From: Selaginella moellendorffii | Lineage: Eukaryota > Plantae > Lycopodiophyta | Assembly (NCBI RefSeq): GCF_000143415.4 | Contig: NW_003314262.1 | Location: forward strand, 4,896,389-4,960,388 | Reading direction: 5' to 3' | Length of the DNA: 64,000 nt | Shown: in pieces, positions 4,761-45,205 of the stretch | Layout: each line of letters begins with the position of its first letter | Position numbering within the stretch: position 1 is the stretch's first letter | Notes under the pieces: generated by a model | The model's database searches: none | What the model saw: the letters and a program-made list of their open reading frames with translations, nothing else | Told to the model about the DNA's origin: nothing | Translations under genes and position numbers: made by a program

Positions 4761-7700
4761 ATATAAGCATAAATGTTATCTATATCTTAGGGTACAAAAC
4801 TATGGATAAACTCGTGGATGAAGCCCTTGTAAAGATTTATTATGATAAGCTACCTAAATGCATAGATAGGGTGACCAATTGTATGAAGGATAAGGGTTTA
4901 GAAAAATTCTATAAAATAATATTAAACTTTGTAAAACCATAAAAAGGCAAATTAACTCTTCAATTATGAGATCCTATAAAACTAGCTTTCAAAATGGATG
5001 AAAGGGATATTAAGATCACTTAAGATTTTATTTTCAAATTTTTCTATCTTCCCATAAAGCTAAATTAGTGGAATTGAAAAGGAGTAGCCTTTCATAAAAA
5101 GCTCAGTCATGGATTTGTTCATTTAGAACAAAGGGAAAATACATGTCCCTTGGGAAAGATTTGTCTTTATGCTAGAGAAACCCTTATATATTTAAGTGTT
5201 CTTTTTGACAAGGAAGTTGCAAAAAAAGAAATCAAATGATATATTAGATAGATATTTTTTTTTCTAGAGTAAGCCTTCCCTCAAAATCTTGCTAGTATGG
5301 TTTATAGAAATTTTCTCCAGGCAATGCATGACTTAAAGGAAAAGAAAAGAAGGGGTAAATACTCTAAGAGTAACATTTATATTTTTCTTGCCCTATTCTA
5401 TAAATTCTACCAATAAACCATAAAGATTAATGAGTAAAGATTACTAATCCAACAAAGAAAAAAAAATTCCACAATATGTTTGTATATAAAAACATAAAGC
5501 TTAAAGCTAAACAAAACAATTTAGATAACTTAGAGGTAGCTAAGGACCTTTTTTCTCCCTTTCGCTCTTTCCCTCTCACTCACTCTATGCCTATACCTTT
5601 GCCAAGATGTGCCAACATTCCAGGCTTAACTCTGAAGCAATGTATAGCAACTCAAATGCCGCCTAAGGCCATGCAAAAGCAAACACCATTGTTATTGCCT
5701 ATTGGGTCAAGTAAATTTATCCTCATGCCACCGTCACAAGCCATTGACTCCACTCTTGCACCGTCAATGCAAGATCTCTCTTAGGCACCTTTGTTGGCAT
5801 TGCAATCTGTCTCCTACTTACCTAATGCCAAATGTTTTACTTATAAATTTCCATAGATAACAAAAATGCTTAAGCAAGATGAGTACATGGAATAAATCTC
5901 ATCCAGTAATAAGGAGCTAGATTATGGCCAAGTAAAACTGTCTAGGGAGCTTTTGTTTTCTCCCTATGATAAGTTTTGGCTTAATGCTTTTGGGTTACTC
6001 GCCTATGGGGAGCTACTTGAAAGAGAAATAACAATCAAGCAAGGGATTGAGCTTATGCAGAAGTAATATCCAAAGACGCATGTTTTTTTTTTCCACTAGC
6101 AAGTCCATCCCTTTGGAATCACCCAATTTGCTCAAATTTTTCACCTAAACAATAAGGGTGAAATAATCATGATGAGTAAGAAGGATCGCATGCCCAAACA
6201 ATACATCCTCCCAAATTACATATTCAAATGATGAGGCAACTTCACCTATTTGAAGCCTAATTATCATGCTAAGCTTAAGGCGTTGTGTGCTATCATCGAT
6301 GGGAGGACGATTGCACAAAATGCTAGTATCAAGATAACCTGTTTGTTGGAAGCTATCAAGACTAGATGGCAAATAAACATAACTCATTTCGCGTACAATA
6401 GATTTGTGGCCGAAATGAAAAATATTGCCTTACAAGTAAGCAAAGGAAAGCAAGTGAAGACGAGAGTTTTCATCTTTTTGCAGCGCATCTATGAGCATTA
6501 CACCACTTAAGTAGATCCCATGCCTCACCTTACCATTGAGCTACCACCTCCAGTATCTCCTCCAAAGGAGATAGTGAGGGATGTGAAAGTAAAGGAGAAT
6601 CCCGATGATACAAATTCAAGGGAGGAAACTTCTCCCTTCAAAAAGAAACTCCATCTAGATCCAAAAGTCCAAGCTATGAGATCTCTAGGGTTTGTTCCGC
6701 AGAAATCTAGTGGTCAAATATGTTGCAGAAAAGCTGGATGCAGCAAGTATAGTGATAAAATGCTACACCCAAATTAGGAATAGAGTCGTGACTCGTTTAC
6801 ATCTACAGAGACAACTCTGATGCCTATACAAATCTCTCCGAGCATTAGAGAAGTGACAAATACACAAATAGACAACACTAGGCAAATAATGGATGCTGAA
6901 GTTGTGGAAGAAATTCCATAACTTAGGCCACAAGGTCCAACATACAATGCATCTATAGATGTTGCAAAACCATTAGCTATAGATATACCCAATGAGATGA
7001 GTGTAGGCCAAGAAGATCACAACTAAGAAACTCAACAGGATAAAAAGGACAAAGCTACAAAAAAGAGTCTAAGTGAACTAGAAGAGTATGAGTTAAATTT
7101 TCTCTAGTCCACCTACACATCTGAATGCAACACTCCCTCAGGCAACAAGTTGTAAGCGACTAATTTTTCCATTCTACTTTAGTCACTTAACCCCACCTCC
7201 AACCACTTGGAGGAGTCTCATTCACAACTTCCATAAGTTTATTTCAGGACTTGGGACTTGCTAGTCCCAAGGGTGGCATCTATGCCACTCAACCTTTGCA
7301 CTTAGTCCAAGTGCTCCACGTGTCCAGTCCCATGACCAACACCCAAAGGTACCACCGACATATCAGCCCGTTATGCTAAGGCTATGCCCATTCACCTTTG
7401 CCGCACTGGTGGTCCAATACCACTTACATCACAGTCTTATCTCTCTAAGACTGGGCCATCTGTCCATAAATGGTCGTCCTAGATCCACTCCGTAGCATCC
7501 TTAGGATGCCCACAGACATGGGGAATAGCCTTCCCCAATATCCTTTTTATAGTCCCCACCAAGTCCCTTTTCTGTCTATGGCCGTGTTCACCAATATTGC
7601 CACTGGGACAAGGCCCATAGGCTCGACCACTAAGTCCCATTGTCCTCTAGGACTTCTTCACCACATGACCGCATCATTGGTCACTACACCAGAGGACCAC

Positions 7701-21102: not shown

Positions 21103-24100
21103 CTAGTTCTCATCAGTGTCACTAGAGTTCCCCTCCCCTCCTGCTTCTTCCTCTGTGTCTCCTGCTTCTTCTTGTGAATCCGGCGCTATCTCGTTGATCG
21201 GACTCGGAATCTCGTCCTTTACAACCATTGCAGAACTCTGACTGCCCAGTGTATCAATCCTCACGACTGCTGCGTCATCCCTTGCAGCGCCTCTAACTTG
21301 CAGGCTATCACTATTTCCAACTTGGCTCGCCAAAACCCTCCTCTCTACTTCATCCTGAGAGTAGTTTCCGTCACTGCCCAGAACTTCGGACGTGACAAGG
21401 TCCGCTGTGCATAGACTACTCCTTCGAAGTTGTGTCTGCGAGTCAGTTCCTCGAAGTCCCCTTGCAAGTAAAGGAGTTCCTGGTACCTGTCCAGCATTCT
21501 CGGTTTCGTTTCTTTCGAGCAGAGGAGTCCCTGGTTCGTTTCCGGCAGTTTCAGGATCTCTTTCCAACGGAGTCCCCGGTACTTCTGCTGCAGTGATTTG
21601 AGTTTCCATAATTGGAGCATCATCCCTGACAGTCGCGTGTTGTCGTGCCTGATCCATATCGAGAGGAATCAACTGTGTAGCATCCCACTGTGTCACGTTC
21701 AGCTGCGTGGGTATGTCTTCTCGAGCTTGTGTCTGATTGTTGTGCTCCACTCTGTAGCCACTGGTTTCCTCTGCCATCTCGTTTAGATCGAGCGTTGCAA
21801 GTAAGGTCTTCTCTTGAGTAGCATTTACGTGTGTGCCATTTGAGCCTTCGTCCCTCATCGTTTCGCCATCCTTCATTTCCTCGTCGACTGTCTTGGACTC
21901 ACTGTGCTCTTCACCATTGTTATAACAGTAGCCAGCAGGAGCGGCATTAGCATACTCCGCATCATCGTCCTTGAGTGTTTGCATCATGGCTTGAAGTTGG
22001 AACTGTTGCTTCTGCTGTAACGCCGAAATCTCTTCCGCAGTTGACTGGAAAGCCCGCAACTGTGTCTCTCTGGAAAGGCAGCTTTTGAGCAAAGTTCTTA
22101 AGGATATGTGTGCTCTTACCTCAGTAAAATACGGTCTCTGGCACCTTCAAATCGTTGGCTTTCAAGTTTGAGCTTGTTCAACACTTCCTCTTTCTCCAGC
22201 TGAAGAGAGGCAATTTTAATATGCGCTGCGTCCTTTTCATGCTAGAAAGAAAGAAAGACAGTGAATCAAATGTCAAAGAAAATTTTCCAACCTTGCATTC
22301 CTCCAGATTGTTTAGAGACATTTCAAGGTCCCGTATCGTTTTTTCCAGCTCCTGAACACAATACGTTAGTTCCATGGTCAAGCTTGTCAAAAAAAGCCTC
22401 CAACCTGTCTCAGGGCCGCAGATGCATGTTGCTCAGTGTTCAATTGGATTTGTAGTTCTTGACCCTTCTTTTCAAAATTCATACGAGTCTCCCTTTCTTC
22501 TTCCTGCATGCCCTGTTATTATGTCCAAGTTCAAGTTCAAGGCTACTGCACTTACCAGTTGCTTTCGCTGGCTTTCGATTTGTACTCGGTACTCGGTCAC
22601 AGAGTCCTGAGACAAATCATAAAAACAATTAAGAAACAGCATCATGATGATTTTTTCTTACTTGAAGTGCGGCCATTTTGTCTTCCAGCTGCCCTCGTTG
22701 TCGAGAGAAAGCTTCAGCTTGTCGATTCGAGTCTTGCTCTGCTTCAGTCCGAATCCTATCTACAGCTGATTTATGCTGTGCTTCAATTTCTTGTCTTTCT
22801 TTCCTCCGCTGACTTCTTTCATCTTCTAACTGTTTCTCGAGCTCTTCCCTGTTCGCTTTGAAGCTGCTAACGGAGCCAATATCATGTTAAAAATCTAAAT
22901 AAACTCAAATGCTTACTTCTTTAAGGCTTCTTCAGCCTCCATTCGTGACTGTGCAGCGCCCTTCAACCTATTGTTCAAGTCCTCTATCACGCTTTCTTGT
23001 TGAACGCATTTCGCAGAAAATTCTTCCATGCTTGAAACCTTTGTTGACAGCTCTGCTTGCAGGTCCGCCAGCTTTTGCGTATACACAGATTTACATTGAT
23101 CGACGGCTTCCCTAACGATCTGCGTAAGATGTAAATCCTCACATACGATTTTTTATAAAGTACTTACTGATTCTGTGGAGGACTTGGCTGCTCTCAAGTC
23201 CGCGTTGAGGCTATCACTTTTATTACACTCGAGCTCCAGTTTCTGTCGAAGCTCCTGTGCATGGTTACACATCAGACAAATACTTATATAGCTTTGTCAC
23301 CAGATTGATTAACGATCACCTGATTGCTTCGCTCTAAACGCCTTACATCTGCTAGATTTACAGGTCCATCTCCAATACCTGATCCGGACATTTTCATTCT
23401 TTTGCCATCCTCGTTCTTGGACAGCTCTACTTCTATAATCAGGAGAGAAAATTGTCAACATAGACAAGCAAAAGAACTCGCAGATACTTAGAGCATGTAC
23501 CTACCTGGTTTTCTTTTCAAACCAGAACTAGTATCCCGAAAGACGTACGCAAACCCATTCTCTGCAAGAGCTACTTAACGAAGTTGGAAAATCCATGTAG
23601 GAAGAAACAATACCAAGTTCCGGAAGAGCTGCCAGCGATATGACATCTCCGTGCTGGAGACGAAGCTCGGGAGAATCTTTCCTCAACCTCTGGCCATTCA
23701 CATAAGTCCCATTTGAGCTGGAAACACAGCACCCCCCAGACGTGGAGCTCTCGAAGCAGCATAGAAACAAGTACCTGGAATCTTTAATGTACGCCGCCCC
23801 GCTGATCCCATCATCAGTAGTGATATTCTTGCGGAAAATTCGGCAATGCCGGCCACTTATGCTCGGCGAATCGAATAGAAACAGAGAGTCCGCGACCATG
23901 CGCCCCAGGGTGTGCTCTGGAAGTGTCAAGAACATATGTTGCCCCTGAAAATCACGAAATCAGGCAATCCTAGCTTAGGAATCCCCCGGCGAGAGACAAA
24001 TACCTGAGCTCGTTTCTTCGCAGCGTCCGAGAGAGCCGAAAGCACGCCCCATGTCCGATCATTCACTCCCGCGGGCAGCGGCTCCTGCAATATTTGCTCC

Positions 24101-24105
24101 GGCAT
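21103..24105 (-). CDS. SMAD/FHA-domain protein with a long coiled coil and an acidic disordered tail, multi-exon
   Basis: FHA motifs HTLGR, SISGRHC, DSSSNGTYVNG and LQHGDVISL. N-terminus MPEQILQEPLPAGVNDRTWGVLSALS. Coiled-coil exons ~22100-23340; last exon 21103-~22080. Confidence 0.85.
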
Positions 24106-24186
24106 AGCTATAGAACCCTAACAAGAAGCCAAAAGCCCTAGTGGAATATCCGCTATAATTTAAATCAAACAGGCGCGCGAAGAATT

Positions 24187-26478
24187 TCAAGCGTTCAATC
24201 TTTGCATTTGGACTCCAGTTTGCTCCGAGGAAGAAGCCTTCGCAGCTCCGGGATCGTCATCGGCGCTGGCAGCAGTGGCAATCGCAGCAGCTTCCGCAAC
24301 ATCTGGCGCCGCTAACACTAGCGGAGGAGGTGCCGGCGCCGCTTGCGCGCCGCCACTCTCCAAGTCATGCTCCTCCTGATCACCACACCGATTCCCAAAG
24401 AACTTCCTCCCACTCCTTCTCGGCCGCTGCTGCTGCTGGAATTGGTGATTCCTCGCGTGATTGTGCAGTGGATTCAAGTTCTCCACCGGATAGTAATCCT
24501 CCCCGACTGCCCGGAGCATATGATAGACCTCGTACATGGAGGGCCTTTCCTTTGGGAAGGATAGAACACACGAGCACGCGATCTTGAGCACTTGCATCAC
24601 CTCCCTCCGCCGCCCGGAGCTTCCGTTGCTGCTATCGCCATTCCCCGCCGCCAGCAGCACCGACGCCTCCGCCACCAGCGACGGATCCACCGCCTCGGAG
24701 ACATGGCCGCTCTTGAAGAGCTCGCCAATCCAATCCACCAGGCTCCTCCTGGAGGAAGAAGACCGCGCGGCAACTCCACCCTCACTGTCACCTCCACCAT
24801 CACCACTGTCACCGCCACCACCACCACCGCCGCCACCGCCGCCACCGCCGACGCCAGCGTTACCATCGTTGGGCCGCCGCCCAGTCACGAGCTCCAGCAA
24901 CACGACCCCAAACGCGTAGACGTCCCCCTTTGGTGTCGCGGTCGTGGACGCGGCGCTCATGCTAGTCGCCCGCGACAGTGAATACGTCGTGGAGTAGTCC
25001 TCGGGCGGCACGTAAAAACCATCCTCGTCACTGTTACTCTTACCGCCGGCGCCACCGGGCCTACCGCGCCCGGTAACTATTAGCCTGGCCAGGCCGAAGT
25101 CCGTGATTCGCGGCTCCAGGTCCTCGTCCAGTAGAATGCTGGCCGAGGTGATACCTTTGTGGACGAGTCGCGGGTTACAGCTGTGGTGAAGCCAGGCAAG
25201 CCCGCGGGCGGTACCCACCGCCACCTTAAGCCGCGCGGCCCAGTCGAGCCGCCCCGAGGTGGAGCCGGAGGAGCTGTCGCCCGGAGTGGATGCCGCGGCG
25301 GTATGCAGCCGGTTGTAGAGGTTACCGCACGGCATGTGTTTGTAGACTAAGAGGCGCTCGTTGCCCGCGATGCAGTAGCCGAGGAGGGGCACAAGGTTGC
25401 GGTGGCGGACCTTGGCCAGGGCCTCCATCTCCGATCGAAAGTGCTTCTCGCCCGCGCTGTGCATGGCGGCGCGGCGGAGCTTCTTCACCGCCAGGACGGA
25501 GCCGTCACGCAGCGTCGCCTTGTAGAACACTCCAGTCCGGGACATGGCGATGACGGCGTCGCGGGAGAATCCGGCGGTAGCGGCGGCGATGTCCGAGAGC
25601 CGGATCTTGACGATGGGCTGCTCAAACATGGAGACGAGCACAGCGCTGGGCGACTTGATCCGCCGGAGCCACGCGTTATCCAGGAGCTCCTCCTCCAGCT
25701 CCGCGCCACTCTTGCGCCGCCGCCGCTGCCCACCCAGTGCCACCCAGCAGCAGAGGAAGCACGCCGCCAGCAGCGCGAGCGTGCCGCCGGCGGCGACGCC
25801 GGCCACCACGGCGGTCCGGGCCCGTGCCGCGCGGTGCGCCGCCGCGGCGCCGGCGGCACCGCCCTTGCAATTGGCGCCCAGCGGCGCGCCGCACAGCGCC
25901 TCGTTGCCCGCGAAGGAGAGCTCCGTGAATGCGTGGAATGTGTATGGAATCGGCCCCGAGAGGCGATTGTCCGCGACATTGAAATCCCGGAGGCGAGGGA
26001 GGAGCCCAATCTGGCCCGGGATCCCGCCCTCGAGCCGATTCCTCTGGAGGCGCAGCTGATTGAGGTAGAGGCACTGCGAGAGATCCTGGGGGATGATCCC
26101 GGAGATGTTGTTCTGCGAGAGATCGAGCTTGACGAGGTAAGGCAGCATCTGGCAGAGATCGGCAGGGATTGGCCCCGTGAAGAAGTTGCTCGAGAGATCC
26201 AGGCCAGTGAGGCTGCTACACTTCCTGAGACCTCGCGGGAAGGATCCATGGAGTCCAGCGCCGGGGAGGGAGAGACTATAGACCTTGATCTCCGAGGGAT
26301 GGAGGCACTGGACGCCCAGGAAGTTGCAAATGTTGGCAGCGCTGGTGTTGAAATCCCACGACTGGAGATACTCGCCCGCTGTGGTGACCGAGCTCTTGAT
26401 CTCGCGCAGGCACTCCACATCCTCCTGCGCCGCCACCGCCATCGCCAGGAGCGCTAGCACCGCTAGCCGCATTGCCAT
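24187..26478 (-). CDS. LRR receptor-like kinase, LRR-X / BIR-like, probable pseudokinase; intronless
   Basis: Signal peptide, EDVECL..IK LRRNT, ~5 LRRs, TM helix and the LVSMFEQPIVKIRLSD juxtamembrane motif typical of the BIR group. HRD is replaced by HKG. Confidence 0.9.
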   Translation of the reverse strand: MAMRLAVLALLAMAVAAQEDVECLREIKSSVTTAGEYLQSWDFNTSAANICNFLGVQCLHPSEIKVYSLSLPGAGLHGSFPRGLRKCSSLTGLDLSSNFFTGPIPADLCQMLPYLVKLDLSQNNISGIIPQDLSQCLYLNQLRLQRNRLEGGIPGQIGLLPRLRDFNVADNRLSGPIPYTFHAFTELSFAGNEALCGAPLGANCKGGAAGAAAAHRAARARTAVVAGVAAGGTLALLAACFLCCWVALGGQRRRRKSGAELEEELLDNAWLRRIKSPSAVLVSMFEQPIVKIRLSDIAAATAGFSRDAVIAMSRTGVFYKATLRDGSVLAVKKLRRAAMHSAGEKHFRSEMEALAKVRHRNLVPLLGYCIAGNERLLVYKHMPCGNLYNRLHTAAASTPGDSSSGSTSGRLDWAARLKVAVGTARGLAWLHHSCNPRLVHKGITSASILLDEDLEPRITDFGLARLIVTGRGRPGGAGGKSNSDEDGFYVPPEDYSTTYSLSRATSMSAASTTATPKGDVYAFGVVLLELVTGRRPNDGNAGVGGGGGGGGGGGGGDSGDGGGDSEGGVAARSSSSRRSLVDWIGELFKSGHVSEAVDPSLVAEASVLLAAGNGDSSNGSSGRRREVMQVLKIACSCVLSFPKERPSMYEVYHMLRAVGEDYYPVENLNPLHNHARNHQFQQQQRPRRSGRKFFGNRCGDQEEHDLESGGAQAAPAPPPLVLAAPDVAEAAAIATAASADDDPGAAKASSSEQTGVQMQRLNA

Positions 26479-32523: not shown

Positions 32524-34766
32524 TTAGAAGTCGATCTCGTCAATGCCCAGCATTCTTGGGCCCGGGATGGTTTTTCCAATGGCTTTGCCGCAGAGAAGAA
32601 CGTTTTGCGGGATCCATGTCTCGGTTCTCGTGGAGTTCTCAGGATTAAACACGCGGGCATAGCCTTCCTGGCCCAGGTACTGGCGTCTCAAGCACTGGGA
32701 CCGGATGTTCCACATTCCTACGTTGTCTACCGAGAAGAGAATCGCCGTCCAGCCTCTCGGGTACACCTACAAGTTGATCAAAGTTGATAGTCAGCGAACA
32801 AAATTTCGTTTCTTTTAGTGTTTTTGGGTGATCGACCAACCTGTGTTGTGGAGCGTGAAACAGCGTCGACCAAGTTGTACTTGGATCGGCTGCTGGGCGA
32901 CCATGTTTCGTTGAATCCAAACCTGGAAGAGCAACCACAATGGATAAGTGATCCGATCCAATCGAGCCCGATCCATACCCGACCACCCAGAAGCTCATCC
33001 CGTCCAAATGCCACGACTGGATCTCGTTCTCCGGGTTGACGAATACGAGCTCCACAAAGCTCTTGTAATCCAGCTCGAGAACCGACGTCTCCATCACCGG
33101 CGAGCCCACGGCACTGGTTCGCATCGATCCCCGCGTGAAAACTCCGTCGATATTGTAGAAATCCGCGAGCTTGAGCGGGGTATCGGGTGTGAGATACGAC
33201 TGCCCGTTGATCGCGAAGCGCGCCTGGTTGTTTAGAGTCACGGAGGAGCTCGAGAGCTGGATCACTCTCGTGATGGGAATTTGGCCATAGTGGTAAGATC
33301 CTTGTGGGTTGGGCCGCGCGGCACCGGTGGTCAAATTCCACCTTAAAGAAGAAAAAGTGTCAGTGAGCTCGGGCAGGTTCTCGGTCATACCGCGCGGCAC
33401 TGCTCGGTCTGGCAAGACTGTACTGCGCGGTACTACTTACTTGATAGATAACGCCTGGTTTAGCGAAAAGTTGACGTCCAAGGGATCCGGGCCGGCCGGG
33501 ATGGTTCCAGATGCCGCAGTGTTGGAATTTTGGTAGTGAAGAATCGCGACGCCGTTGAGTGAGCCGGAGCTGAATTTGGTGCTTGCGACAATGTAGTAGT
33601 CCGCGGGGCTCTGATCCATAGTGACGAGCACCGAGTAGGATTGCCCGAGATGGATGTCGAGCGAATCGAAGCACGTCTTGGCGGTGTAGGAGCCCTCGGT
33701 TTCCACCACGCAGAGCTTGTGGGACTGGATCCGGACGTTGAGTGATTGGGCGGTTCCAACGTTTGAGATACGGAAGCGGTAGATCTTCCCTGCGAGATTG
33801 GAAATGCCCGAGTTGATCGATCGAGAAGTTTTTCGCAGGATCGAGTGGGAGTGATGCTTACCAGATTCGACAGTGAACTTCTCAAAGTTGGCATTGCTAC
33901 CACCCGCAATGTATGGTGCCTTGCCATTCATAAGAACAACGTTTGGTCTTCCAATGCCTTGGCTCTTATCCAGTCGTGATCGGCTCGACTGTTTAATCAC
34001 ACAAAGATTTGTCCACCAATCTTGATGTGAGATCGTTGCAACAAGAAAAAGAAAGAAAAAAAGAACGCACGCGTTCTTCCACTGACCCGATAGTCTCGAA
34101 GCTGCCAATCACCGGCCAAAAGCGTGAAATCGTCCGCGGGCGGTAGGAAAGGAACGGCAATCACTACGCGATTGGCGATCTGGATTCCACCATAGCCTCC
34201 CGCGGCCTTGTGGAAATTGATGGAAGGGTAGTAGAAGAAGGTCCCGATTTGATCCTTGACTTGGAAATTATACTGCCACGACTGGCCGGGCAAGATCGGG
34301 CAATTCGTTCCCGAGACGCCGTCTTGCCAGGATGATCGCCGCTGCTGGATCCCATTCCTGGATCATGGATCACGAGATTGGAAATGGATTAACGGAAACA
34401 AAACCGAAGTGATCATACCAGTGAAAGAGCAGGGGCTCGTCGAGGCGATTCGTCACGTTGATGTGGAGATTGTTGTTCGTGGTGGTCTTGATCGTGGGTC
34501 CTGGAAATTGGTTGTTGATCGCGATCACCTGGGAAGAACAATGTGAGATTTGAGACCCCAAAGAAACAGAGCATAGCAAATAGTGCGTGGTGTATGCGTG
34601 TGATGATTGATTGATTGATCGATCTTACTCTTTGTGTGGTGCCCAGCAGTGGCAAATTCTGAAATGTGACTACCCAGTCGAGGAACTGATCTGGATCCGC
34701 TGCCTGTGCCGTCGATGCTAGTGCAATAACTGCGAGAATCGCGAGGAATTTGGCGATGGCGGCCAT
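32524..34766 (-). CDS. SKU5-similar (SKS) multicopper-oxidase-like protein, without an evident GPI tail
   Basis: Signal peptide, INNQFPGP, WQDGVSGTNCPI, VKDQIGTFFY, WNLTTGAARPNPQGSYHYG and DNVGMWNIRS. Confidence 0.92.
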
Positions 34767-35516
34767 GTTTGTCGTCGTGAGGAACAGAGCACTCTGTTTG
34801 AAGAAGTGGCGGATCAAATTGTAGAATTCGAGAGCCTTTCCTATCAGAGCTGTTGAATTTCGCGGCCAAAGATCAAAGGCGATGGTGACCGTGGAGTTCC
34901 TCTGGCGATTTATAGCTGAATTTGCTGAGAGAAGGGGAATTTCAAAGAAGATGAAGCTTCAAAGCAAGATCGTGCGACTCAAGTTCCGCAATGAGCTGCG
35001 TCCAGCGCACATGAACTGATGGAGCGCCCAAAACAAAGTCGACGATTCAAGCCGAAGATTCTTGGCAGTAAAAACCGGAGTTGATGATAAAAAACACCTC
35101 ACAACTAGCACCAAAATTCATGAAAATTCCGCGCTTAGCCGCAAAGCCAGTTGATCGATCAAGTTACCGATCGACCTAGCTTGCAATTCCGGTGCGAGCG
35201 CGTGAGGTTTACTTGCAGCTCCGCGCCCGCTGCTTTGCACAGCAATTCCACGCGTCCTCTAGAACACACGCAGCGGGCGTGCGTGGGGGCTAGCGGCCGT
35301 TGGATGCACTTATCCGCCGGCCACGAATACATAGCGTGGCGATATCGGCACTGTTGGATGTTAACGCGTTGGACGGACAGTAGGCAAAAGAATAAATAGC
35401 CATGGCCACTGTTGCGATTGTGTCTATATGTTGTTTCTTTCTCAAGATGTTGCGTAAAGTAACGTGCATTGGATGAATGGATTAAAAGAGTCATATATAC
35501 GTGTGCCCTAAGTTTG

Positions 35517-35600
35517 AATTCAAACGTTGGAATATTCGAAAGCCCTAGAACAGAGTTTAATTCAAACGTTGGAATATTCGCATGCCCTAGAAGAGAGTGA
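35517..35600. repeat. ~42-bp tandem duplication in the divergent SKS/ABCG intergenic region
   Basis: AATTCAAACGTTGGAATATTCG...GCCCTAGAA(C/G)AGAGT occurs twice. Confidence 0.85.
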
Positions 35601-35789
35601 ATAGCGCGGGCCGGCCAAGAGGCTATGGGTGCCGTTTGTATCGCCGCTTGGACTCTCTAATAAATCCACGCTCGGGCTTTGAGCTGTAGCCAGCAACGCG
35701 ACGAGTTCGCGGACAAATCAACGCTGAAGCGTTTCTTCAATCCGTCGATCAATCAATCAATCGCTCTGGAGCTTTTGCCAAAAGGAAGA

Positions 35790-38700
35790 ATGGCGAGGCC
35801 AATCTGGTGGAAGGGCGATGAGGCAGTCACTCTGGATCAATCGCCCTCCCAGCGATCGTCCTATTATGGCGAAGAGGACGAGAACTACGATTTTAGCTTC
35901 CAGAGTAGCTTTCAGGCATCGCCCATGGCTAGAACGATCCACGCGACCTCTTCGCCAATGGGCAATGGCGGCTTCAGTCCCTCGCAGCTGGGCAATGGTC
36001 CGGATCGCGTGTTCGTGGTCCCTGTCCGGGGATCCGAGACGCCAATCACCAGGTCCAAGATTCCTCCTCCTCCGCGCGGCCGGATGGGCAGCACCACGCC
36101 TGAAATCGAGCGCCGGCTTGCCAATGCCGAGGCCGGCACCGTCCAGGGCGCTGCGCTGGAGATGTATCGGGTGCTCAAGAAGAATGGATTGGCCGCCCAG
36201 GCGGAGAAGGCGATCAAGCGGCTCAACAGTGGCATTAGCGGCGCGGCGGCGGAGGAATCCCTGCTGGGGATGGAATTCATCCTCAAGGATGGGATCGTGA
36301 GCTTCCTCAGGGAGCTCTCCAAGCTCGCGCCTCCAGTTCCTCAGCAGGTAAATCAATCGCTCGCGAAAATATTTTTAGGGTTCTTCATTTTCTCGTTGTC
36401 TACAGGTAGTGAGGTTTTCTGGCGTGCGCCTCAGCGTCTCGCAAGAACAGGCGCTGGGGTATGAGACATTCGGCGGCAAGCTGCTGGGATGCTTCTTGGG
36501 GCCGCTGCGGAATCTACTGCTGGACAGGAAGACGATCAAGAGGAAGATCGAGGTGCTAAAGGATCTGGATGGATTTATCATGCCCGGCAGCACTACGCTG
36601 CTCTTGGGGCCTCCCGGGAGTGGGAAAAGCTCGTTGCTCAAGGTATTTCTTCAGCCGCATTCATGTGTTTGCTTGGGTAGAATGTTCTTCTTTGGCGTTT
36701 TTTTCCTGGAATCCTTGATGGCCGTATTCTCATGATCTTGTTTCCTTCTTCGTTCAAGTTCTTAGATTGTTCCACCGCAAGGTTCTTCATTTGTCGTCTG
36801 GGATCTTTCTCTTTTAGTTTTTGTTTTTTGGTAATCAGCTTTCGACTTTTTTCAGGTGCTCGCCGGGCGATGTGAATCCAACAAAACCACTAAACTACAA
36901 GGAATAGTTTCTTACAATGACCGACTAGCTTCCGAGGTCGTGCTTACTCGACTCATTGCTTATGTCAATGGACAAGTGAACAGGTATTAAAAGCTTGTAA
37001 ATCTCCAGGTGCTAACATTGAGCGTTTCTTCAAGGCATTTGCCGTTTCTAACAGTTCGCGAGACGCTAGAGTTTGCTGGGGATTGCACGCAAGGGATCCG
37101 ACCAAAAAACTTCACTCCCAGCATGCGGAGGTACTTTGCTCAAGCTCTAGTGCAAGGGCAGGACCCATACCTGGAGTATGTTCTTCATGTTCTGGGGCTC
37201 AAGGCCGTGGAAGATAAGCTCGTTGGAATCGGCCAAGACGGTCTAAGTGAAACAAACAGGCACAGACTTACAAGTGCTGAGCTAGCAATCGGGACTTACG
37301 CAGTAATGATCTATGACCAGCCTTGCTACGAGCAGGACTCGCAGGCAACGTATGACCTCGTCTTCACCTTGCGTGCGATAAGCCGCATACAACGGTCTTC
37401 TGCGGTGATGTCGCTGGTTCAAGTATCTCCAGAAGTTTTCGAGCTTTTTGACCGGGTGATAGTCTTGGGAGATGGACAGATACTTTACCAGGGACCACGA
37501 CAAGACGTCTTGGATTACTTCTCTGTGCTGGGGTATGTTCTATAGCTTGGCTTTCGAGTTTATCTTAACATGGGATTTTTTTCTCGCTATGCAGATTTTC
37601 GAAACCGTCTCATGTTGACACAGCTGCATTCTTGCAAGACATTGGAGCAGGTGAAGGCGGTCAATACGTAAAAGGAAACCGGCAACTATATGGGATTGAA
37701 GAGCTCGTCGAGGCTTACAAATCCTCAGACTTGTACAAAGACATCGTCCGGATAGTGTCCAGTGACGATGTTGCGTTTACGTACTGGGTGGAGCATGAGC
37801 CTAGCATTGGTTTGTCAGTGCGTAAATCCTCAAACGGTGCAGGTAAAGTGTTTGGAAGTGTTTTATTTGTGTTTTAACCAGCCTTGTACATTCATTGCAG
37901 AGGTGGTAGTAAGTAGACTATCCACTAAAGTCGACCAAGCTCAAGGAATTGAGAGTACTGGGCATATCCAAGAAGGTGACATTGTCACTGGAATTTCTCT
38001 AAGGAACGGAAGGATGCAGTATATTGCAGTAGGATCGAAGATAACCCGGAAGAGCTATGCTGATGATATATCCAAGGTTTTGGAAGGGGCTAGAGGACAC
38101 GTCCGACTCCAAGTAGAGCGAAGAGCAACAGAGCAGGAAGTCGAGAGCTCACAACCAGCGTTTGTGCAAACCTGGTGGGAGTCGACAAAAACAGTCACCA
38201 AGCGTCAGCTACGATTTGCAACTCGTCTCAAGATACTTGTTATCTTGCGTCTCACTCAAGTTCGTATCGACTGTTCCTTTCTTCATTCATGCGTGATAAG
38301 TTTTACAGGTTGTGATCTTGGGCATTTTCGGGGGAGCTATATTCTATAACTTCGGTGGATCTCTTGATCCGGGAGAGATGAACATTGTTCGAGCGATCGG
38401 CTTTGTTTCTACTTTCAGTATTATGCTTGTCAACGTTGTTCAACTTCCGGTGCACATGATTCAGCGGCCGGTTTTTTACAAGCACAGAGCGCAGCGTTTT
38501 TTCAGAGTTTCCTCGTATTTAGCAGCTCAGAGCATCGTCAACCTTCCACAGTCTATTATGGAGGCAAGGCGCCCATTGCATTTTACTTGTGGATTCTGAC
38601 CTGGGATTTGTTGTGGCAGGCCCTTCTGTACAGCATTCCAGTGTATTTTCTTGCAAGACTTTCACTGGAAGAAGCTGGACTTCATTACATTCAGTTCTTT

Positions 38701-41280
38701 TGGCTATTAGCGTTAGTGGCATACATGGGGTCTTTTCTTGTCATTTTTCTGAGTACAATTACTCCAGTTCTCGAAGCTGGGAACGCTTTAGCAGGTTTGT
38801 TTTACATTTTTCTTATATTTGGTCTAACTCAGGATCGTGTGTCAGGCTTGGTGGTTTCTCTCGGTTTATTGTTTTCCGGATTCGTTATCTTTCCGAGCTT
38901 GACTCCACGCTACTGGAAGTGGATGCTTTCGGCCAATCCGCTCCGTTGGGGAAATGTTATATTCTGCATGGCCGAGTTCCTCAATCGCTACCATGAATCT
39001 TGCCAAGACTTTCAGCAACTTCTGTTTTGCCGGAAACATCCAGATCTACCAGTTGGCCGGGCGTACCTCGAGTTTTTCCAGCTTGATTCGGAGAGAAAAT
39101 GGATGGCAATATCCTTCGCAATTATTGCTGCTTCGGTTCTCATTCTGGCGCTCGCTTCTTACTTGGGACTCAGCAAAGTCGTCTTTTCGGAAGTAAGTCC
39201 TTCCTTGCCAAGCGAGCCTGCAAGGAGTTCTTACAAGCAATCGGAGGACAAGCAGAAAGATATCTCTTGGGACGGACTATCCAGAATAACCGAGATGAGC
39301 AACTTGGAAACCAAGACATTGTGGGAGAAGAATGGTAGCACCTATGACGACGAAGAGCTTGGCCTTGGGCTTGAACTGCGGGGAACAGGTCACCAGTGGG
39401 AGAATTCGCACATACCCGTGAAAGCAGCCACGTTATCATTCCACCAAGTGAGTTTCTCTGTAAAAGCCGAGGAGAAGATAGTGCTGGACAGGGTCTCGGG
39501 ATTCGCAAAGCCAGGGACAATGCTTGCAATTATAGGGAGCATGGGCTCAGGGAAGTCCACTCTTTTAAGAGTTCTCGCAGGACGAACTCTGCCATCGTCA
39601 AGTGGGGAACTTATCTCGGGTGAAGTGCTGGTGAACGGATTCAAGCTGAGTAGCAACACCTTCCGGCGGCTGTCTGGTTTCGTGGAGCGAGTGGACGCTC
39701 ATCAGCCATTCTTGACAGTGAAGGAGTCACTCGATTTCAGTGCCGGTCTTCGTTTTGGAGGCAGCACAACCCCCGGCCGCCGGGCCTTTCACGTAGAGCT
39801 CGTCCTGGAACTTATGGGCCTCGTCGGCGTCAAAGACCAGCTAGTGGGATCTCTCAAGTTTTCAAACGGGAAGATCTTTGAGCTCGCCAAGAAGCTGACC
39901 ATCGCTGTGGAGGAGCCGTGAGTCGGCATGATTTTTCTCGAGGACCCGACGTCCGATCTCGACAGCGTCGCCACCAGGAACATCCTGTTCGCCATCCAAA
40001 CGGTTGCAGCATCCGGCCGCACTGTTATCAGCACGATCCAGCAGCCGAGCGCTAGAGTTCTCAGTGCCTTTAACAACGTTCTTATTATGAGACCCGGTGG
40101 GGAGCAAGTTTACTTTGGTCCCGTCGGCTGGAACTGTGCCCAGCTTCTGGAATACTTCACGACGATGTCGAGCGCTCCAAAGTATGAGCAGAGCCAGAAC
40201 CCGGTGACTTACATGTTCGATATCATCCGAAAGGACGAGCAAAACCTCGGCCTTGTCTATCGAGCAAGTTCTCTGGGAAGCTCCAACGCCGAAGAACTCA
40301 AGAAACTCCGGAAGCAGTACCGGAAGAACTCGTTGCGGCCGGCGCTGGATTCGACTTACGCCGCTCCTTACTCCAAGCAGGCCTGGTTGGTCTTCCTGAG
40401 AACACAGAGGTTCCTCTACCGCAACGTCCAGTACACGTTTGGACGGCTCTCCGGGTCGATCGCTCTCGGCCTTTTGCTCGGCTCGGTCTACTACAAGATC
40501 GCCACCAACGATACGTTCTCGGTCACGTCCCGGTCGCTTTTCATCTACATCCAGGTGATGCTACTGGGTGTGATCATCGCCAACAACGTCGTCCCCCAGC
40601 TTGGAACGGACAGGTTGGTCTACCACAGGGAACAGCGAGCAGCGATGTACGCTCCAATCTTCTATCCGGTGTCTTGGGCGATCGCGGAGATCCCATACCT
40701 GTTCATCGCGACGCTGGTGTTCGTGGGGATCTCAAACGGGCTGGCAGCGATCGCGACGCAGAGCGTGAGCAGCTTCGTCACGTACTGGCTGTGCCTCTTC
40801 GTCTTCACCACCACCGTGATGTACTTCGGTATGTTCATCACCATCGCCACCCCGGTTCCAGTGCTGGCGGCGTTCGTGGTGTCCATCACGAACTCCATCT
40901 GGGTCTCGGCCTCCGGCGTGATCGTCCCAAAGGCCAAGATGGGATTTTGCGAGTGGGTCTTCTGGGCGAATCCATTCCAGTACGTGACGCACGCGCTGAC
41001 GAGCGTGAGCTTCTTCTGCGACACCGCGAGCGCGGCGTGCGCGAGCTGCCGGGTGGGCGATGCGAATTCGTGCGCGGGATGCCACTGCCCGCGGCTGCTC
41101 AACGCCGAGAGCTCCGATCCGGGGAGCTTGCCGGTGTTCGTGTGGGATCGATTGAGCTCGCAGCGATCGCTGGAGGTGGAGAGGGTCTCGCTGGATTTCG
41201 TCGCTCTGGGCGGGATGAGCGTCCTCTTCGCGCTGCTTTCTTTCCTCGCCTTCGTGTGGATGAAGCACAACAGAGGATGA
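35790..41280 (+). CDS. Atypical full-size ABCG (PDR-type) transporter, NBD1-[PDZ-like]-TMD1-NBD2-TMD2, with an in-frame TGA at 39919
   Basis: Walker A motifs GPPGSGKSS and GSMGSGKST; [43 protein letters not shown]; two multi-helix TMDs. Exons join in frame through short introns (e.g. 36348-36405, 36643-36855, 37843-37900, 38564-38619). Confidence 0.88.
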
Positions 41281-42329
41281 AGAAGAAGCGCAAAATCAAC
41301 GGTCCAGATGAGCTCTCATTTTTTAATTCAACGGCCTCGATGAAACGGGCAAACGTGCCCACCGTTGTGGCATATTCACCGAATCTCCAACAGGGTTAGG
41401 GTTTATGGCAAGCGGCATTGTTTTGTGCGTGATCAACCGGTCGTCCAGGGCGGATCGTGTGCGCGGCGCCGCCGAGTAGCAGCTAGATCGCGCACTCTCA
41501 CAGCAGCGCCGAATCTTTCTTCCTTTTTTCTATTCCCTCTGATCAATCGCCGCCGCGGCGCTTATCTTGCTAATAATCTCGCTTTGCGCGCCGCGGATTC
41601 CACATCAAGATCGCGTGCGGTGCCGCTGTCCAGCCAATTCATCCAGCACTTCTCTCCCTTTTGTCCGGGCTCTCTTGGTTCGATCGATCATCCAGTTCCA
41701 GGTAGATTCCTTGCGCGAGGGCTTCCAATGCTAGCGCCGGCCATTCGCTAGGTACGATAGAGAGAAGAAATCGCGGGCACACAAGGGGGGGCCGGGTGAT
41801 GATGGGAGTTATCATAAAATTTGCAAAGCGGGTGTTCTACAGTGGAACAACGTGAATGGTATGGTCTGGCAAGTGGCAGTGATAGGATTTCTTCCAGAAT
41901 GGGGCTCGGGGGGTCTATGGCACCGCCAGGAGCTACGAGTAGCTCGAATTTTTTGTGACAGCGTGTGGGAACTACCTATGTAGCTATAGATTTCTCGCTA
42001 CTGGCAGCCGAGAAGTAGCAGTAGCAGCACAGTGGTACAGACAGGCACAGGGAAAGGATGGTCCGTGTGAGCAGCAGCGATGGATGATTCACTCCCCGAC
42101 AAGCACGCCATTCTTAATTGCTGATGCTGCTGCTACAGCTCCGGTGAGCATTTCGTAAGCACTCCATCAGAGACCCTCGTGGATGAAAGAAATGGGATGG
42201 GGCTTTCGCCAGGAAAGTTCCGGTTTTGATGACGATGGCAGCGAGAAGTTTGTCATGGGGTCTCCGTGGTCGCGCGAGGTTTCCTAGAGTAGCTTCGAGG
42301 TAGCATAGAGGGCTTTGGTGCCTGGGAAG

Positions 42330-45205
42330 ATGCCCTTCCCATGGAGCAAATCTTCGAAGAAATCGTCGTCCAATTCTTCCGGTAAGGATAAGGCTGACAA
42401 CAGCAAGCTTTACTCTCTCGGGAAGAAGGGTCCGCGGTTGTCAGGCGAGGATGACGGGTCTTCGAGGGGCTCCAGGAGTAGTTACGATTCTTCGGCCAGG
42501 GTGGTAGCGGCGGATGCTCCTACATTCTCGCCTTCGTCTGCCGGAATTCGAAGCCCGCTCTTTCCCGAGCCGCAGGCATTCAAGGGACAGCCTCTTCCTT
42601 TGCCGGAAAGTACTACCAAGATTCAGCTTTGCAATGGAACTCTTCCGCTGCCGACGTATGACCAAGTCGAGTTTAAGCACGAGGTTGCCGAATTGGACGG
42701 GACGACTTCGGGATATGGTTCTGGTTCTATCTCCAGTGGAAGCTCCACAAGCAGTGGGGAAGCAGCGGACGCTTGGCTTGGAAGTTCCAATCGCCAGCAA
42801 ACCGATCAAAATGGACACGCAAACTCCTTGTAAGCTTTTACTTTATGTTTTTAACTTTCGCGAGAAGTGCTTGCTCACCTGGTTTCTTTCTTTTTTCTTT
42901 CAGCTCACTTCAGAAAAACCAAAACAGAGCTGGAAGAAATCCACACCAGAAAGAGGCGGTTCCGAAGACGGTACCTCCAGGAAATAAGACGAGCTCCGTC
43001 TCCCCATTGCGAGCTCGTGCTGCGGCGGCAAAACAAGGCATGCATTTACATCTACCGGCACGTAGCGCACCAACCAGCCTCATCTCCAGTCCTTCTCACA
43101 GTCCAAGACGTTTAAGTTCGTCGGAGCAACAGGCTTTGTTCCAGAACTACAGTGCTGTGACGAACTCCACAAACCAGGGACGAAACAGTCCAGAAAAATC
43201 TCCTCTTGCAAGTCCGATACGAGGCGGTTCGAGGATTCAAAGTGGTGCTGTCTCTCCCCTGCACCATTCAAGTTCCAGAGGTACAGACTCGCCTAGTGTC
43301 GGGCATCGGCTCCCTCCGCCACCGGCATTTACAAACTCGACAGTAAATTCTCCAGCGTCATCTACATTTCCTCTCGGTTCACCGCCTGGCATGCCTTCGC
43401 ACAGTCCGATCAGGTGGCAAAAAGGAAACCTCCTTGGTGTTGGCTCTTTTGGACGAGTGTACAAAGGCTTTAGGTATGCTTCTGATATTCTCGGCCTACT
43501 CCACGAGCTGATGGTTTGTTTTTCTTTGTTTGCAGTGATAGTGGTACCTTTTGTGCAATGAAAGAAGTCCTAGTTGTGGATGATCCTAAGTCTATAGAAT
43601 CTGTAAAACAGCTAATGCAGGTATGCTGCCGTTCTCATTGCACGTTCCTGTCACTGACTGGTGTTTCAGGAAATAAATATGCTAAGTAGTTTAAGACATC
43701 CTAACATTGTTCAATACCTTGGCTCAGAAATGGTAAGGTTAAGGTATCTCTTAACTAGATGTCTCATTTCTCCTTTCTTGCTGCCTGCAGCTGGACGATA
43801 GTTTGTATATTTATTTGGAGTTCGTTTCCGGAGGCTCGATACACAAGGTGCTCCAGGAATATGGTGCTTTCAAAGAGCCCGTCATTCGTAGCTATACGCA
43901 GCAAATCCTATCTGGACTCCAATACTTGCACAGTATGAACAAAGTTCACCGGTTCGTTGACTCTGTACTCTTGCGGGCTTCTATTAACAGCGCCTTTATT
44001 ACAGAGACATCAAAGGTGCGAACATTCTCGTTGACACTAATGGTGAAGTCAAGCTAGCGGATTTTGGAATGGCCAAGCATGTAAGTAGCAAGCTGTGGTT
44101 TTTGTTGTTTACTTATCCATCCACGCTTCAGATATCTTCTAGTTCACTTGTGCTATCTTTTAAAGGAAGTCCCTACTGGATGGCTCCTGAGGTATGTCCA
44201 CGTTTTCTTTCTTCTAATACTTCTATGACACCGTCACACGGCTACTCCTTTTTAGGTTTTCAAGAGTAATGCGCAAAGCTATCCAGTGGATATCTGGAGT
44301 CTAGGATGTACAATCATTGAAATGGCAACTGGAAAACCACCATGGAGCCAGTACGAGGGGGTATGTATTTTTTTGTAGTTTCTGTGCGTGCTCACTTACT
44401 TGTACACAGATTGCAGCCATGTTCAAGATTGGAAACAGTAAGGAGACTCCTACAATACCGGACACCTTATCGCCAGTGGCGAAGGAGTTTATCAGGTTGT
44501 GCTTACAGCGAAATCCCGACGATCGTCCAACAGCTTCTCAACTATTAGAGCACCCCTTTGTCAAGTTTTTGCACGATGAACATCTTCCGGATGGCCTTCC
44601 ACCTCTGTCGCCAACATTTCGCTCAGTGGTACGTGATATTCTTTGTTTTCCATTCTTTTGTTTCTTTTGGATGATGTTGAGTGATCAACCTGCATGATCA
44701 TCCAGGTTGCGAATTTAAGCCACGATAGAGGGGGACAGTATCATCCGCGGTAATGTTTTTTAAGCACAAAAACGATACGCTGACGATTGTTTCTCGCTTT
44801 TGCTTTTGTAGAGATCTCATGTCTCCTGTTAGCAGCAATTCGGCCTACACGAGATCAATCTATTCCAGCTATGGAGGTCTCACACCAATTATCACATCTG
44901 GAACTTCCACACCCCAAACCGAGGAAGCTCCAGCCGGGTTTGCGAAGGACAGATATACCATGGCTTCAAGAGTGAACGGAATGCACATAAGAAACGAGCC
45001 AAGATTTACGGCGACTGCTGTTTCGTCACCAGGGACTAGAAGTCCAAGGGCTGCTCAAAGGAGCGAGTTCGTGTGGAATCCACCGGTACAGCTCACTCCG
45101 GATGCCAGTCCAAGGCGTATGTCCAGCGATATCTTGAGTACAAACTCTAGATTCTATGCAAATTCTCTTCTCGGTAAGCAAGCTCTTCCTTTTTCCTTGC
45201 TTTGA
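42330..45205 (+). CDS. MEKK-type MAP kinase kinase kinase, YODA/MAPKKK-alpha-like, multi-exon
   Basis: Ser/Pro-rich N-terminus with GQPLPLP and [12 protein letters not shown]. Kinase motifs [45 protein letters not shown] and [13 protein letters not shown]. Confidence 0.93.

Follow-up and report, generated by a model that had tools for sequence, protein, structure and literature searches.

A full-size ABCG-fold protein of Selaginella moellendorffii with two degenerate nucleotide sites, conserved from liverworts to grasses

Can a full-size ABCG protein be maintained by selection when neither of its nucleotide sites has the consensus for ATP hydrolysis? An ABC transporter is assumed to require one hydrolytic site or more, and the question is raised by a nine-exon full-size ABCG gene (35790-41280, plus strand) in a 64,000-nucleotide stretch of the Selaginella moellendorffii genome (contig NW_003314262.1), referred to here as the window. 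A preliminary description of this DNA had proposed that both nucleotide-binding domains (NBDs) of the encoded protein have lost hydrolysis motifs and kept Walker A, that the reading frame, including both transmembrane domains (TMDs), is intact over more than 1600 codons, and that the product binds ATP without pumping. We find that the gene encodes a full-size ABCG-fold protein that is real, expressed and selectively maintained. Judging from its sequence, we put the probability that this protein binds ATP, does not hydrolyse it and does not pump at roughly 60%.

The motif strings quoted in the preliminary description are all present, on the plus strand, where it had placed them, and we set their canonical counterparts by HMMER alignment to the solved Cdr1 and Pdr5. 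In this alignment, YDQP of NBD1 lies opposite WDNA of the fungal NBD1 or LDEP of NBD2, and LEDP and IQQPS of NBD2 lie opposite LDEP and IHQPS. Two further losses, which the earlier reading had missed, are the Gln of the NBD2 Q-loop and the His of the NBD1 H-loop, although canonical plant PDRs likewise have no His at the latter position (SLLQPA). The motifs are as follows, where the clade is the group of orthologues described below.

36607..36633, plus strand: NBD1 Walker A, canonical (from the clade alignment)
36958..37038, plus strand: NBD1 Q-loop, lying across intron 36984-37034, with a one-residue insertion typical of the clade; Gln mostly kept
37240..37269, plus strand: NBD1 signature position, Gly-Gly lost (canonical GISGGQKKRV; aligns with GVSGGERKRV)
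37303..37341, plus strand: NBD1 Walker B VMIYDQP (37303-37323), catalytic Glu replaced by Gln, then a degenerate D-loop CYEQDS (37324-37341)
37411..37428, plus strand: NBD1 H-loop position SLVQVS, without His
39535..39561, plus strand: NBD2 Walker A, canonical in this gene and degenerate in angiosperm orthologues
39676..39702, plus strand: NBD2 Q-loop position GFVERVDAH, Gln replaced by Arg
39847..39912, plus strand: NBD2 signature position, without LSxEQ; conserved replacement motif of the clade, GSLRDATGKTFEIAKKITIAVE
39928..39966, plus strand: NBD2 Walker B MIFLEDP (39928-39948), Asp replaced by Glu and catalytic Glu by Asp, then D-loop TSDLDS
40030..40050, plus strand: NBD2 H-loop STIQQPS, His replaced by Gln

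A consensus ATPase site has the Walker B Asp-Glu pair, the H-loop His and an LSGGQ-type signature in the partner domain, and neither site of this protein has that set: site 1 combines YDQP with a non-signature partner, and site 2 combines LEDP and QQPS with the partner LSETN. One letter in the NBD2 H-loop differs between sources. At position 40036, contigs from the public RNA runs X1, X6 and X7 have G and both assembled haplotypes and the DNA run X5 have A, a change from Ile to Val just before QQPS (STIQQPS to STVQQPS). Variation between strains, an error in assembly or a difference between RNA and DNA could account for it.

Are these substitutions peculiar to one gene? Homology searches used single exons or deposited proteins as queries, exons being joined only for motif placement and codon counts. 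An exhaustive HMMER search with the first part of exon 9 returned 15387 proteins at E <= 0.001, and a profile search returned 585 at E <= 1e-30; our description of the group rests on the first search and on the best 120 of these 585. Among the matches listed, a distinct group scored 1300-2640 bits at 41-51% identity. Proteins of Closterium and relatives that we call group B scored about 1000-1200 bits, and ordinary plant PDRs about 600-650 bits, with 25-28% identity over about half the length. Members of the distinct group include a liverwort (Calypogeia), two further Selaginella paralogues, a fern (Adiantum) and gymnosperms (Cryptomeria and Taxus). Its flowering plants include Amborella, the magnoliids Magnolia, Asimina and Tasmannia, the monocots Dioscorea, many PACMAD grasses and Oryza brachyantha, and the eudicots Coptis, Tetracentron, Dillenia, Camellia, Cinchona, Coffea, Escallonia, Hevea, Euphorbia, Linum, Turnera, Eucalyptus, Syzygium, Parasponia and Corchorus.

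In a maximum-likelihood tree of 47 proteins, 31 sequences form one clade (clade A), with 100% support in the Shimodaira-Hasegawa-like approximate likelihood ratio test (SH-aLRT). The internal order of clade A mirrors the species tree, from the liverwort to grasses and eudicots, which indicates that one orthologue was inherited vertically. Group B, from Spirogloea, Riccia, Calypogeia and Adiantum, is sister to clade A, and its motifs have degenerated differently, for example to TLTxxExHRV at the NBD1 signature and to FDN, FDQ or FDE at Walker B. The next branch out holds the Closterium proteins, in which all motifs are canonical, and ordinary PDRs, including one from Selaginella, form a separate clade with 100% support. 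The gene described here falls within clade A by monophyly and carries its other marks: NBD1 YDQP, the motif GSLxxxxGKxFExAKKxTIAVE and an insert with a PDZ-like fold. Clade A is an ancient streptophyte branch apart from the ordinary plant PDR pumps.

The preliminary description had named canonical motifs in orthologues as an observation that would speak against its reading. No orthologue with canonical motifs was found, and the same substitutions recur across about 31 land-plant species; because they are conserved among clade members, they are old, shared and themselves constrained. This is clearest in NBD1, the most conserved domain, with a mean top-residue frequency of 0.81 compared with 0.72-0.74 for the TMDs and 0.70 for NBD2. 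Its Walker A reads GPPGSGK[ST] in clade A, with the three Gly and the Lys invariant, and its signature is [GA]ISD[TI]DRQKL (consensus GISDTDRQKL) rather than GISGGQKKRV. Every clade member that has NBD1 carries Y-D-Q at Walker B, so the Glu-to-Gln change is fixed in the clade.

NBD2 is more variable. The clade-specific motif that replaces its signature, GSLRDATGKTFEIAKKITIAVE, is conserved at 0.85, and its Q-loop Gln is Lys or Arg in most of the clade. At Walker B, the liverwort, fern and gymnosperms have LDEP and most angiosperms LEEP; LEDP is found in this gene and a few others. Most members carry the H-loop His one position away from its usual place (TLTHPN, TMKHPS), and this gene has no His there (TIQQPS). 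Walker A is canonical in this gene and the gymnosperms (GxxxSGK[ST]T), whereas its Lys is substituted in the liverwort and fern, most angiosperms have GGSKxSKxT, and the P-loop Lys is gone in grasses. Thus, in this lycophyte gene, as in gymnosperms, the earlier claim that both Walker A motifs are kept stands; it fails for the clade as a whole, as angiosperms have lost the NBD2 P-loop.

A second character that distinguishes these proteins lies between NBD1 and TMD1.

37764..38124, plus strand: PDZ-fold insert in the NBD1-TMD1 gap, across intron 37843-37900 (from alignment, AF2 model and fold searches)

In the alignment, the insert amounts to about 100-135 extra residues in clade A, group B and the Closterium relatives, and is absent from canonical PDRs. 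It is older than the loss of the catalytic motifs, because both group B and the otherwise canonical Closterium proteins carry it. An AlphaFold2 (AF2) model of the insert built from 22 orthologues had a mean confidence (predicted local distance difference test, pLDDT) of 62. The top 50 matches to this model were all PDZ domains both in Foldseek (E 0.015-0.12, template-modelling scores 0.4-0.6) and in VIA-align (Z 6.2-7.9). At the position of the carboxylate-binding loop, which is GLGF in PDZ domains, the clade consensus is EPGLGLS (GLGL) and this gene reads EPSIGLS (SIGL). The Pfam PDZ models did not recognize the insert, falling far below their cut-off (PDZ_2 E 0.25; PDZ E 0.099 with the Hevea orthologue). 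With moderate confidence, we conclude that the insert has a PDZ-like fold, the PDZ fold being a beta sandwich in which a long helix precedes the last strand.

Is the gene itself in working order? The part of the window from 32790 to 44280 is identical (100%) to GL377566.1:4929178-4940668 of assembly GCA_000143415.2. The models deposited for the locus are EFJ36959.1 and XP_024536979.1, and the allele of the other assembled haplotype is XP_024525467.1 (P0160, 1631 residues).

35790-36347, 36406-36642, 36856-36983, 37035-37532, 37595-37842, 37901-38259, 38309-38563, 38620-38794 and 38846-41280, plus strand: coding region in nine exons (from spliced contigs and the deposited model)
36643-36855, 36984-37034, 37533-37594, 37843-37900, 38260-38308, 38564-38619 and 38795-38845, plus strand: introns seen in spliced contigs (X1, X6 and X7, splice sites checked)

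These seven introns are cut out in the spliced contigs of X1, X6 and X7, which come from three studies; the contigs are therefore derived from RNA, and the ABCG gene is transcribed. The same contigs are unspliced from 38846 to past 41400. Intron 38564-38619 (56 nucleotides) is of the GC-AG type, and the three spliced contigs agree on it. The first intron (36348-36405) lies outside the coverage of these contigs and is taken from the deposited models and from the junction PPVPQQ|VVRFSG, which is conserved in orthologues. The splicing supported by RNA gives a reading frame colinear with XP_024525467.1.

Furthermore, the gene is under purifying selection. Apart from one aberrant patch, 48 coding positions distinguish the two haplotypes, 31 by synonymous and 17 by non-synonymous changes (p = 3e-9, binomial, against a neutral expectation of 3.2:1). 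The proportions of synonymous and non-synonymous differences (pS and pN) are 0.027 and 0.0046, and the introns diverge by 1.5%. The ratio of non-synonymous to synonymous change (dN/dS) is 0.17, a whole-gene figure, as the counts per domain are too small for a comparison between domains. Neutral evolution of this copy, the other outcome that the preliminary description had said would count against it, is not what the haplotypes record.

The claim of an unbroken frame does not hold for the letters of the window. An in-frame TGA at 39919-39921, overlooked in the preliminary description, lies in the same frame as both of its flanks. Under the RNA-supported splicing it is codon 1178 of 1631, and it falls between the NBD2 signature position and Walker B.

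39913..39927, plus strand: aberrant 15-letter patch with the in-frame TGA; 18 letters (LAANPS or RAANPG) in reads or in the other haplotype (from contig comparison)

Over this stretch, the contigs of four runs differ from the window only at the patch (39913-39925), by six or seven substitutions and three extra letters. Those of X1 and X6 read LAANPS there, those of X7 and of the DNA run X5 read RAANPG, and the TGA is in none of the four. The other haplotype (L002, XP_024525467.1, EFJ33605.1) also reads LAANPS, with no stop. As the frame is open in three RNA studies, one DNA run and the other haplotype, the TGA very probably arose as an error in the assembly of 2011; the ABCG gene is intact as transcribed, and the window's own letters are not. 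The deposited models of the locus are wrong, and EFJ36959.1 hides the assembly stop behind an invented intron of 51 nucleotides (39916-39966), which deletes Walker B and the D-loop. We also considered a 28-nucleotide intron of the form GTGAGT...AG over the TGA (39918-39945) and rejected it: it would be shorter than the 49-213-nucleotide introns of this genome, Walker B would be lost with it, and the RNA contigs show no gap at this place.

How might a protein of this kind work? In ABC ATPases, the signature of the opposite domain contacts the gamma-phosphate. In Pdr5, the Walker B Glu polarizes the attacking water and the H-loop His acts as the proton shuttle; the magnesium ion is coordinated by the Q-loop Gln, and the Walker A Lys is the residue that binds the gamma-phosphate. 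When the Walker B Glu is replaced by Asn or Gln, hydrolysis is abolished and ATP stays bound (PMC8421411). Measured against these roles, both composite nucleotide sites of the Selaginella protein would be without the chemistry for ATP hydrolysis. Site 1 would be formed by the P-loop and Walker B of NBD1 with the signature position of NBD2. Its P-loop Lys and its Walker B Asp are invariant, Gln stands where the catalytic Glu would be, and a non-signature motif faces it; such a site would be expected to bind Mg-ATP and not to cleave it. By analogy, its layout is that which holds Mg-ATP uncleaved in Glu-to-Gln mutants and in natural degenerate sites. Site 2, which would pair NBD2 with the NBD1 signature position, has an intact P-loop in this gene and may still bind ATP. 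However, it would do so with Glu-Asp for Asp-Glu, Gln for the H-loop His, Arg for the Q-loop Gln and a partner signature that has no Gly-Gly. On this view, the protein would bind ATP as a ligand, held stably or exchanged slowly, would not use it as fuel and would not cycle as a pump. It could instead be a nucleotide-dependent, non-cycling membrane protein that serves as regulator, gated conduit or receptor, and the PDZ fold would be its putative docking site. The narrower suggestion of the preliminary description, a channel, sensor or scaffold, is speculation.

Two rival explanations draw on the stop in the window. The window copy could be a truly broken allele, with a premature stop on one haplotype and a functional gene on the other; after all, the TGA is present in the deposited GL377566.1, to which the window is fully identical, and the original annotators needed their invented intron to dodge it. 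However, the contigs of X1, X6 and X7 match the window base for base at the approximately 28 covered sites at which the assembled haplotypes differ, so that X1 and X6 follow the window haplotype at all other heterozygous sites and yet read LAANPS at the patch. X7 follows the same haplotype and reads RAANPG, as does the DNA run. The patch itself, which retains G at 39913 and 39925 as in the RAANPG version, resembles a corrupted copy of that version, with a handful of small indels that together remove three letters. We therefore regard a broken allele as improbable; a small probability of a genuine private lesion is left, since rare variants can be missing from contigs. The wider possibility, that the motif losses are neutral decay in a dying gene family, could draw on the same stop and on the patchy presence of clade A among angiosperms. 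It has to contend with full-length open frames in 31 species from all major land-plant groups (liverworts to flowering plants), a gene tree that follows the species tree, conservation at the substituted positions themselves, and a gene that is transcribed and correctly spliced. It also has to contend with a dN/dS of 0.17, and we consider it very improbable indeed. The single stop, absent from the reads and from the other haplotype, together with that ratio, is also why we rejected the simpler label of pseudogene for this locus.

A more serious competitor is that the protein is still an ATP-driven transporter, in which site 2 works slowly with non-canonical residues (an acidic pair and a displaced His) and site 1 is a degenerate regulatory site as in fungal PDRs, where such degeneracy is normal for Pdr5 and Cdr1. 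Several observations weigh against a non-hydrolysing protein, and some of them are also ones on which the slow pump would rest. Two acidic residues stand at the NBD2 Walker B in nearly every member, and the liverwort, fern and gymnosperm orthologues combine LDEP with a neighbouring His, so that slow catalysis at site 2 is conceivable in some lineages. The His adjoins the canonical H-loop position in most orthologues, and this gene keeps the NBD2 P-loop. Glu-to-Asp and His-to-Gln changes reduce activity, not always to zero. Furthermore, both TMDs are as well conserved as in a working transporter, which fits a pump too. Outside the catalytic sites, the PDZ assignment rests on a model of moderate confidence (pLDDT 62), and there have apparently been repeated losses of clade A among angiosperm families, which suggests that its protein is dispensable in many plants. 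The slow pump, on the other hand, must do without Gly-Gly in the partner signature of NBD1 throughout the clade and without the NBD2 Q-loop Gln. In the present gene it must do without both the His and the catalytic Glu, and in angiosperms the protein is kept after the loss of the NBD2 P-loop. This stepwise loss at site 2, from gymnosperms to angiosperms to grasses, with the protein retained, suggests that hydrolysis there is dispensable. On balance, we think it rather unlikely that the protein is a slow pump. The ATP-binding, non-pumping protein of the preliminary description fits the conserved substitutions, the purifying selection and the invariant P-loop, Walker B Asp and Gln of NBD1; conceivable residual activity at site 2 in some lineages limits this support.

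How, then, does this protein compare with known systems? Its Pfam order is NBD-TMD-NBD-TMD, with two matches each to ABC_tran and ABC2_membrane, which is the reverse topology of a full-size ABCG with ABC2_membrane-type TMDs. In the PDR family model TIGR00956 it scores 593 bits against a cut-off of 1959, and the canonical Selaginella PDR also falls below, at 1304 bits. The best sequence matches in the Protein Data Bank are the fungal PDRs Pdr5 and Cdr1 (7P03 and 9IUK; E 1e-31 to 3e-32). These share its domain order and ABC2-type TMDs and its degenerate site 1, in which another residue takes the place of the NBD1 Walker B Glu (Asn in the fungal proteins, Gln in this one) and NBD2 carries a non-canonical signature. 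However, their site 2 is fully canonical (DE, H-loop His, VSGGE) and drives transport, whereas here it is degenerate, and they have no PDZ-fold insert. Thus, the second degenerate site and the insert set clade A apart from Pdr5 and Cdr1.

Canonical plant PDRs of the ABCG29-43 type (Selaginella P0227, Sorghum ABCG36 and Nicotiana PDR1) are similar in superfamily and topology, but their motifs are all canonical, including those of P0227 from the same species, they form a separate clade and they have no insert. They also contain PF14510 (ABC_trans_N) and PF08370 (PDR_assoc). Neither is among the best 25 of the 40 Pfam families matched by XP_024525467.1; in the precomputed Pfam lists of the clade members, PF14510 is absent from all and PF08370 is found only in Cryptomeria and Calypogeia. 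The ABC proteins in which a single site is degenerate (Pdr5, CFTR, SUR, TAP1 and MRP1) resemble clade A at site 1 and differ from it at site 2, which here is not consensus.

Among these, CFTR and SUR1/2 are membrane proteins of the ABC fold that hold ATP at site 1 and in which nucleotide binding serves to gate or regulate a process other than pumping. The parts of PMC5626490 drawn on here treat the asymmetry of the nucleotide sites of CFTR. CFTR and SUR belong to the ABCC family, with another TMD fold and one hydrolytic site kept, and are related to clade A by superfamily only. A bolder proposal is that land plants have kept an ABCG-fold pseudo-ATPase for more than 450 million years, in which NBD1 would be a permanent or concentration-sensing ATP module and the PDZ fold would dock a partner, as a plant counterpart of SUR and CFTR, in analogy alone, with no hydrolytic site at all. 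We hold this tentatively, at somewhat less than an even chance.

Has the clade been seen before? In the sections drawn on here, Cho et al. 2020 (PMC8359288) describe V1-Type proteins, early-diverged full-size ABCGs outside the main radiation of plant PDRs, from charophytes, bryophytes, Selaginella and Amborella, and state that they are absent from other angiosperms. Their position and part of their taxon range match clade A, a match by description only, and clade A is probably the V1-Type. If so, absence from angiosperms other than Amborella does not hold, as we find clade A orthologues in many eudicots, magnoliids and grasses. The account in Cho et al. 2020, within those sections, is phylogenetic: neither degenerate NBDs nor a PDZ insert is mentioned, and 'Walker B' does not occur in the text. 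The literature searched, which leaves out most subscription journals, contained no description of the degenerate NBDs or insert of clade A, and an earlier description is possible. On PDZ domains in ABC transporters (ABCGs included), on ABC proteins degenerate at both sites and on degeneracy in plant full-size ABCGs, the same literature offered nothing of relevance except Cho et al. 2020 and some general reviews.

If an ATP-binding protein without hydrolysis is the correct reading, clade A would be a natural test of ATP binding alone in the ABCG fold, as both sites would be disabled and yet conserved from liverworts to grasses, and it would point to an unstudied plant function. A knockout is feasible, as Setaria viridis and other tractable species have a member of the clade.

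The remaining parts of the gene are an N-terminal extension and the two TMDs.

35790..36540, plus strand: N-terminal extension of about 230 residues, the last third of which is conserved in the clade
38185..38979, plus strand: TMD1 (ABC2_membrane), with three introns inside, one of them GC-AG (from Pfam and spliced contigs)
40378..41007, plus strand: TMD2 (ABC2_membrane, E 3e-24; from Pfam); after it come an extracellular loop rich in Cys and the final helix

A Pfam search gave no recognized match for the N-terminal extension or for the insert. In TMD1, the model of the other haplotype, EFJ33605.1 (P0009), is faulty near residue 780, where it skips about 31 residues (VFYKHRAQ...SIMEA) that are present in the RNA contigs. 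Upstream of the ABCG gene, on the minus strand (32645-34817), lies a multicopper oxidase gene with three Cu-oxidase domains, and downstream, on the plus strand from 42315 onward, lies a protein kinase gene; the order of oxidase, ABCG and kinase is identical on both haplotypes. Elsewhere in the window, composition shifts sharply, from a guanine-plus-cytosine (GC) content of 0.55 with a GC skew of +0.20 at 1-2000, to 0.29-0.31 at 2001-6000 and 0.64 at 24001-26000.

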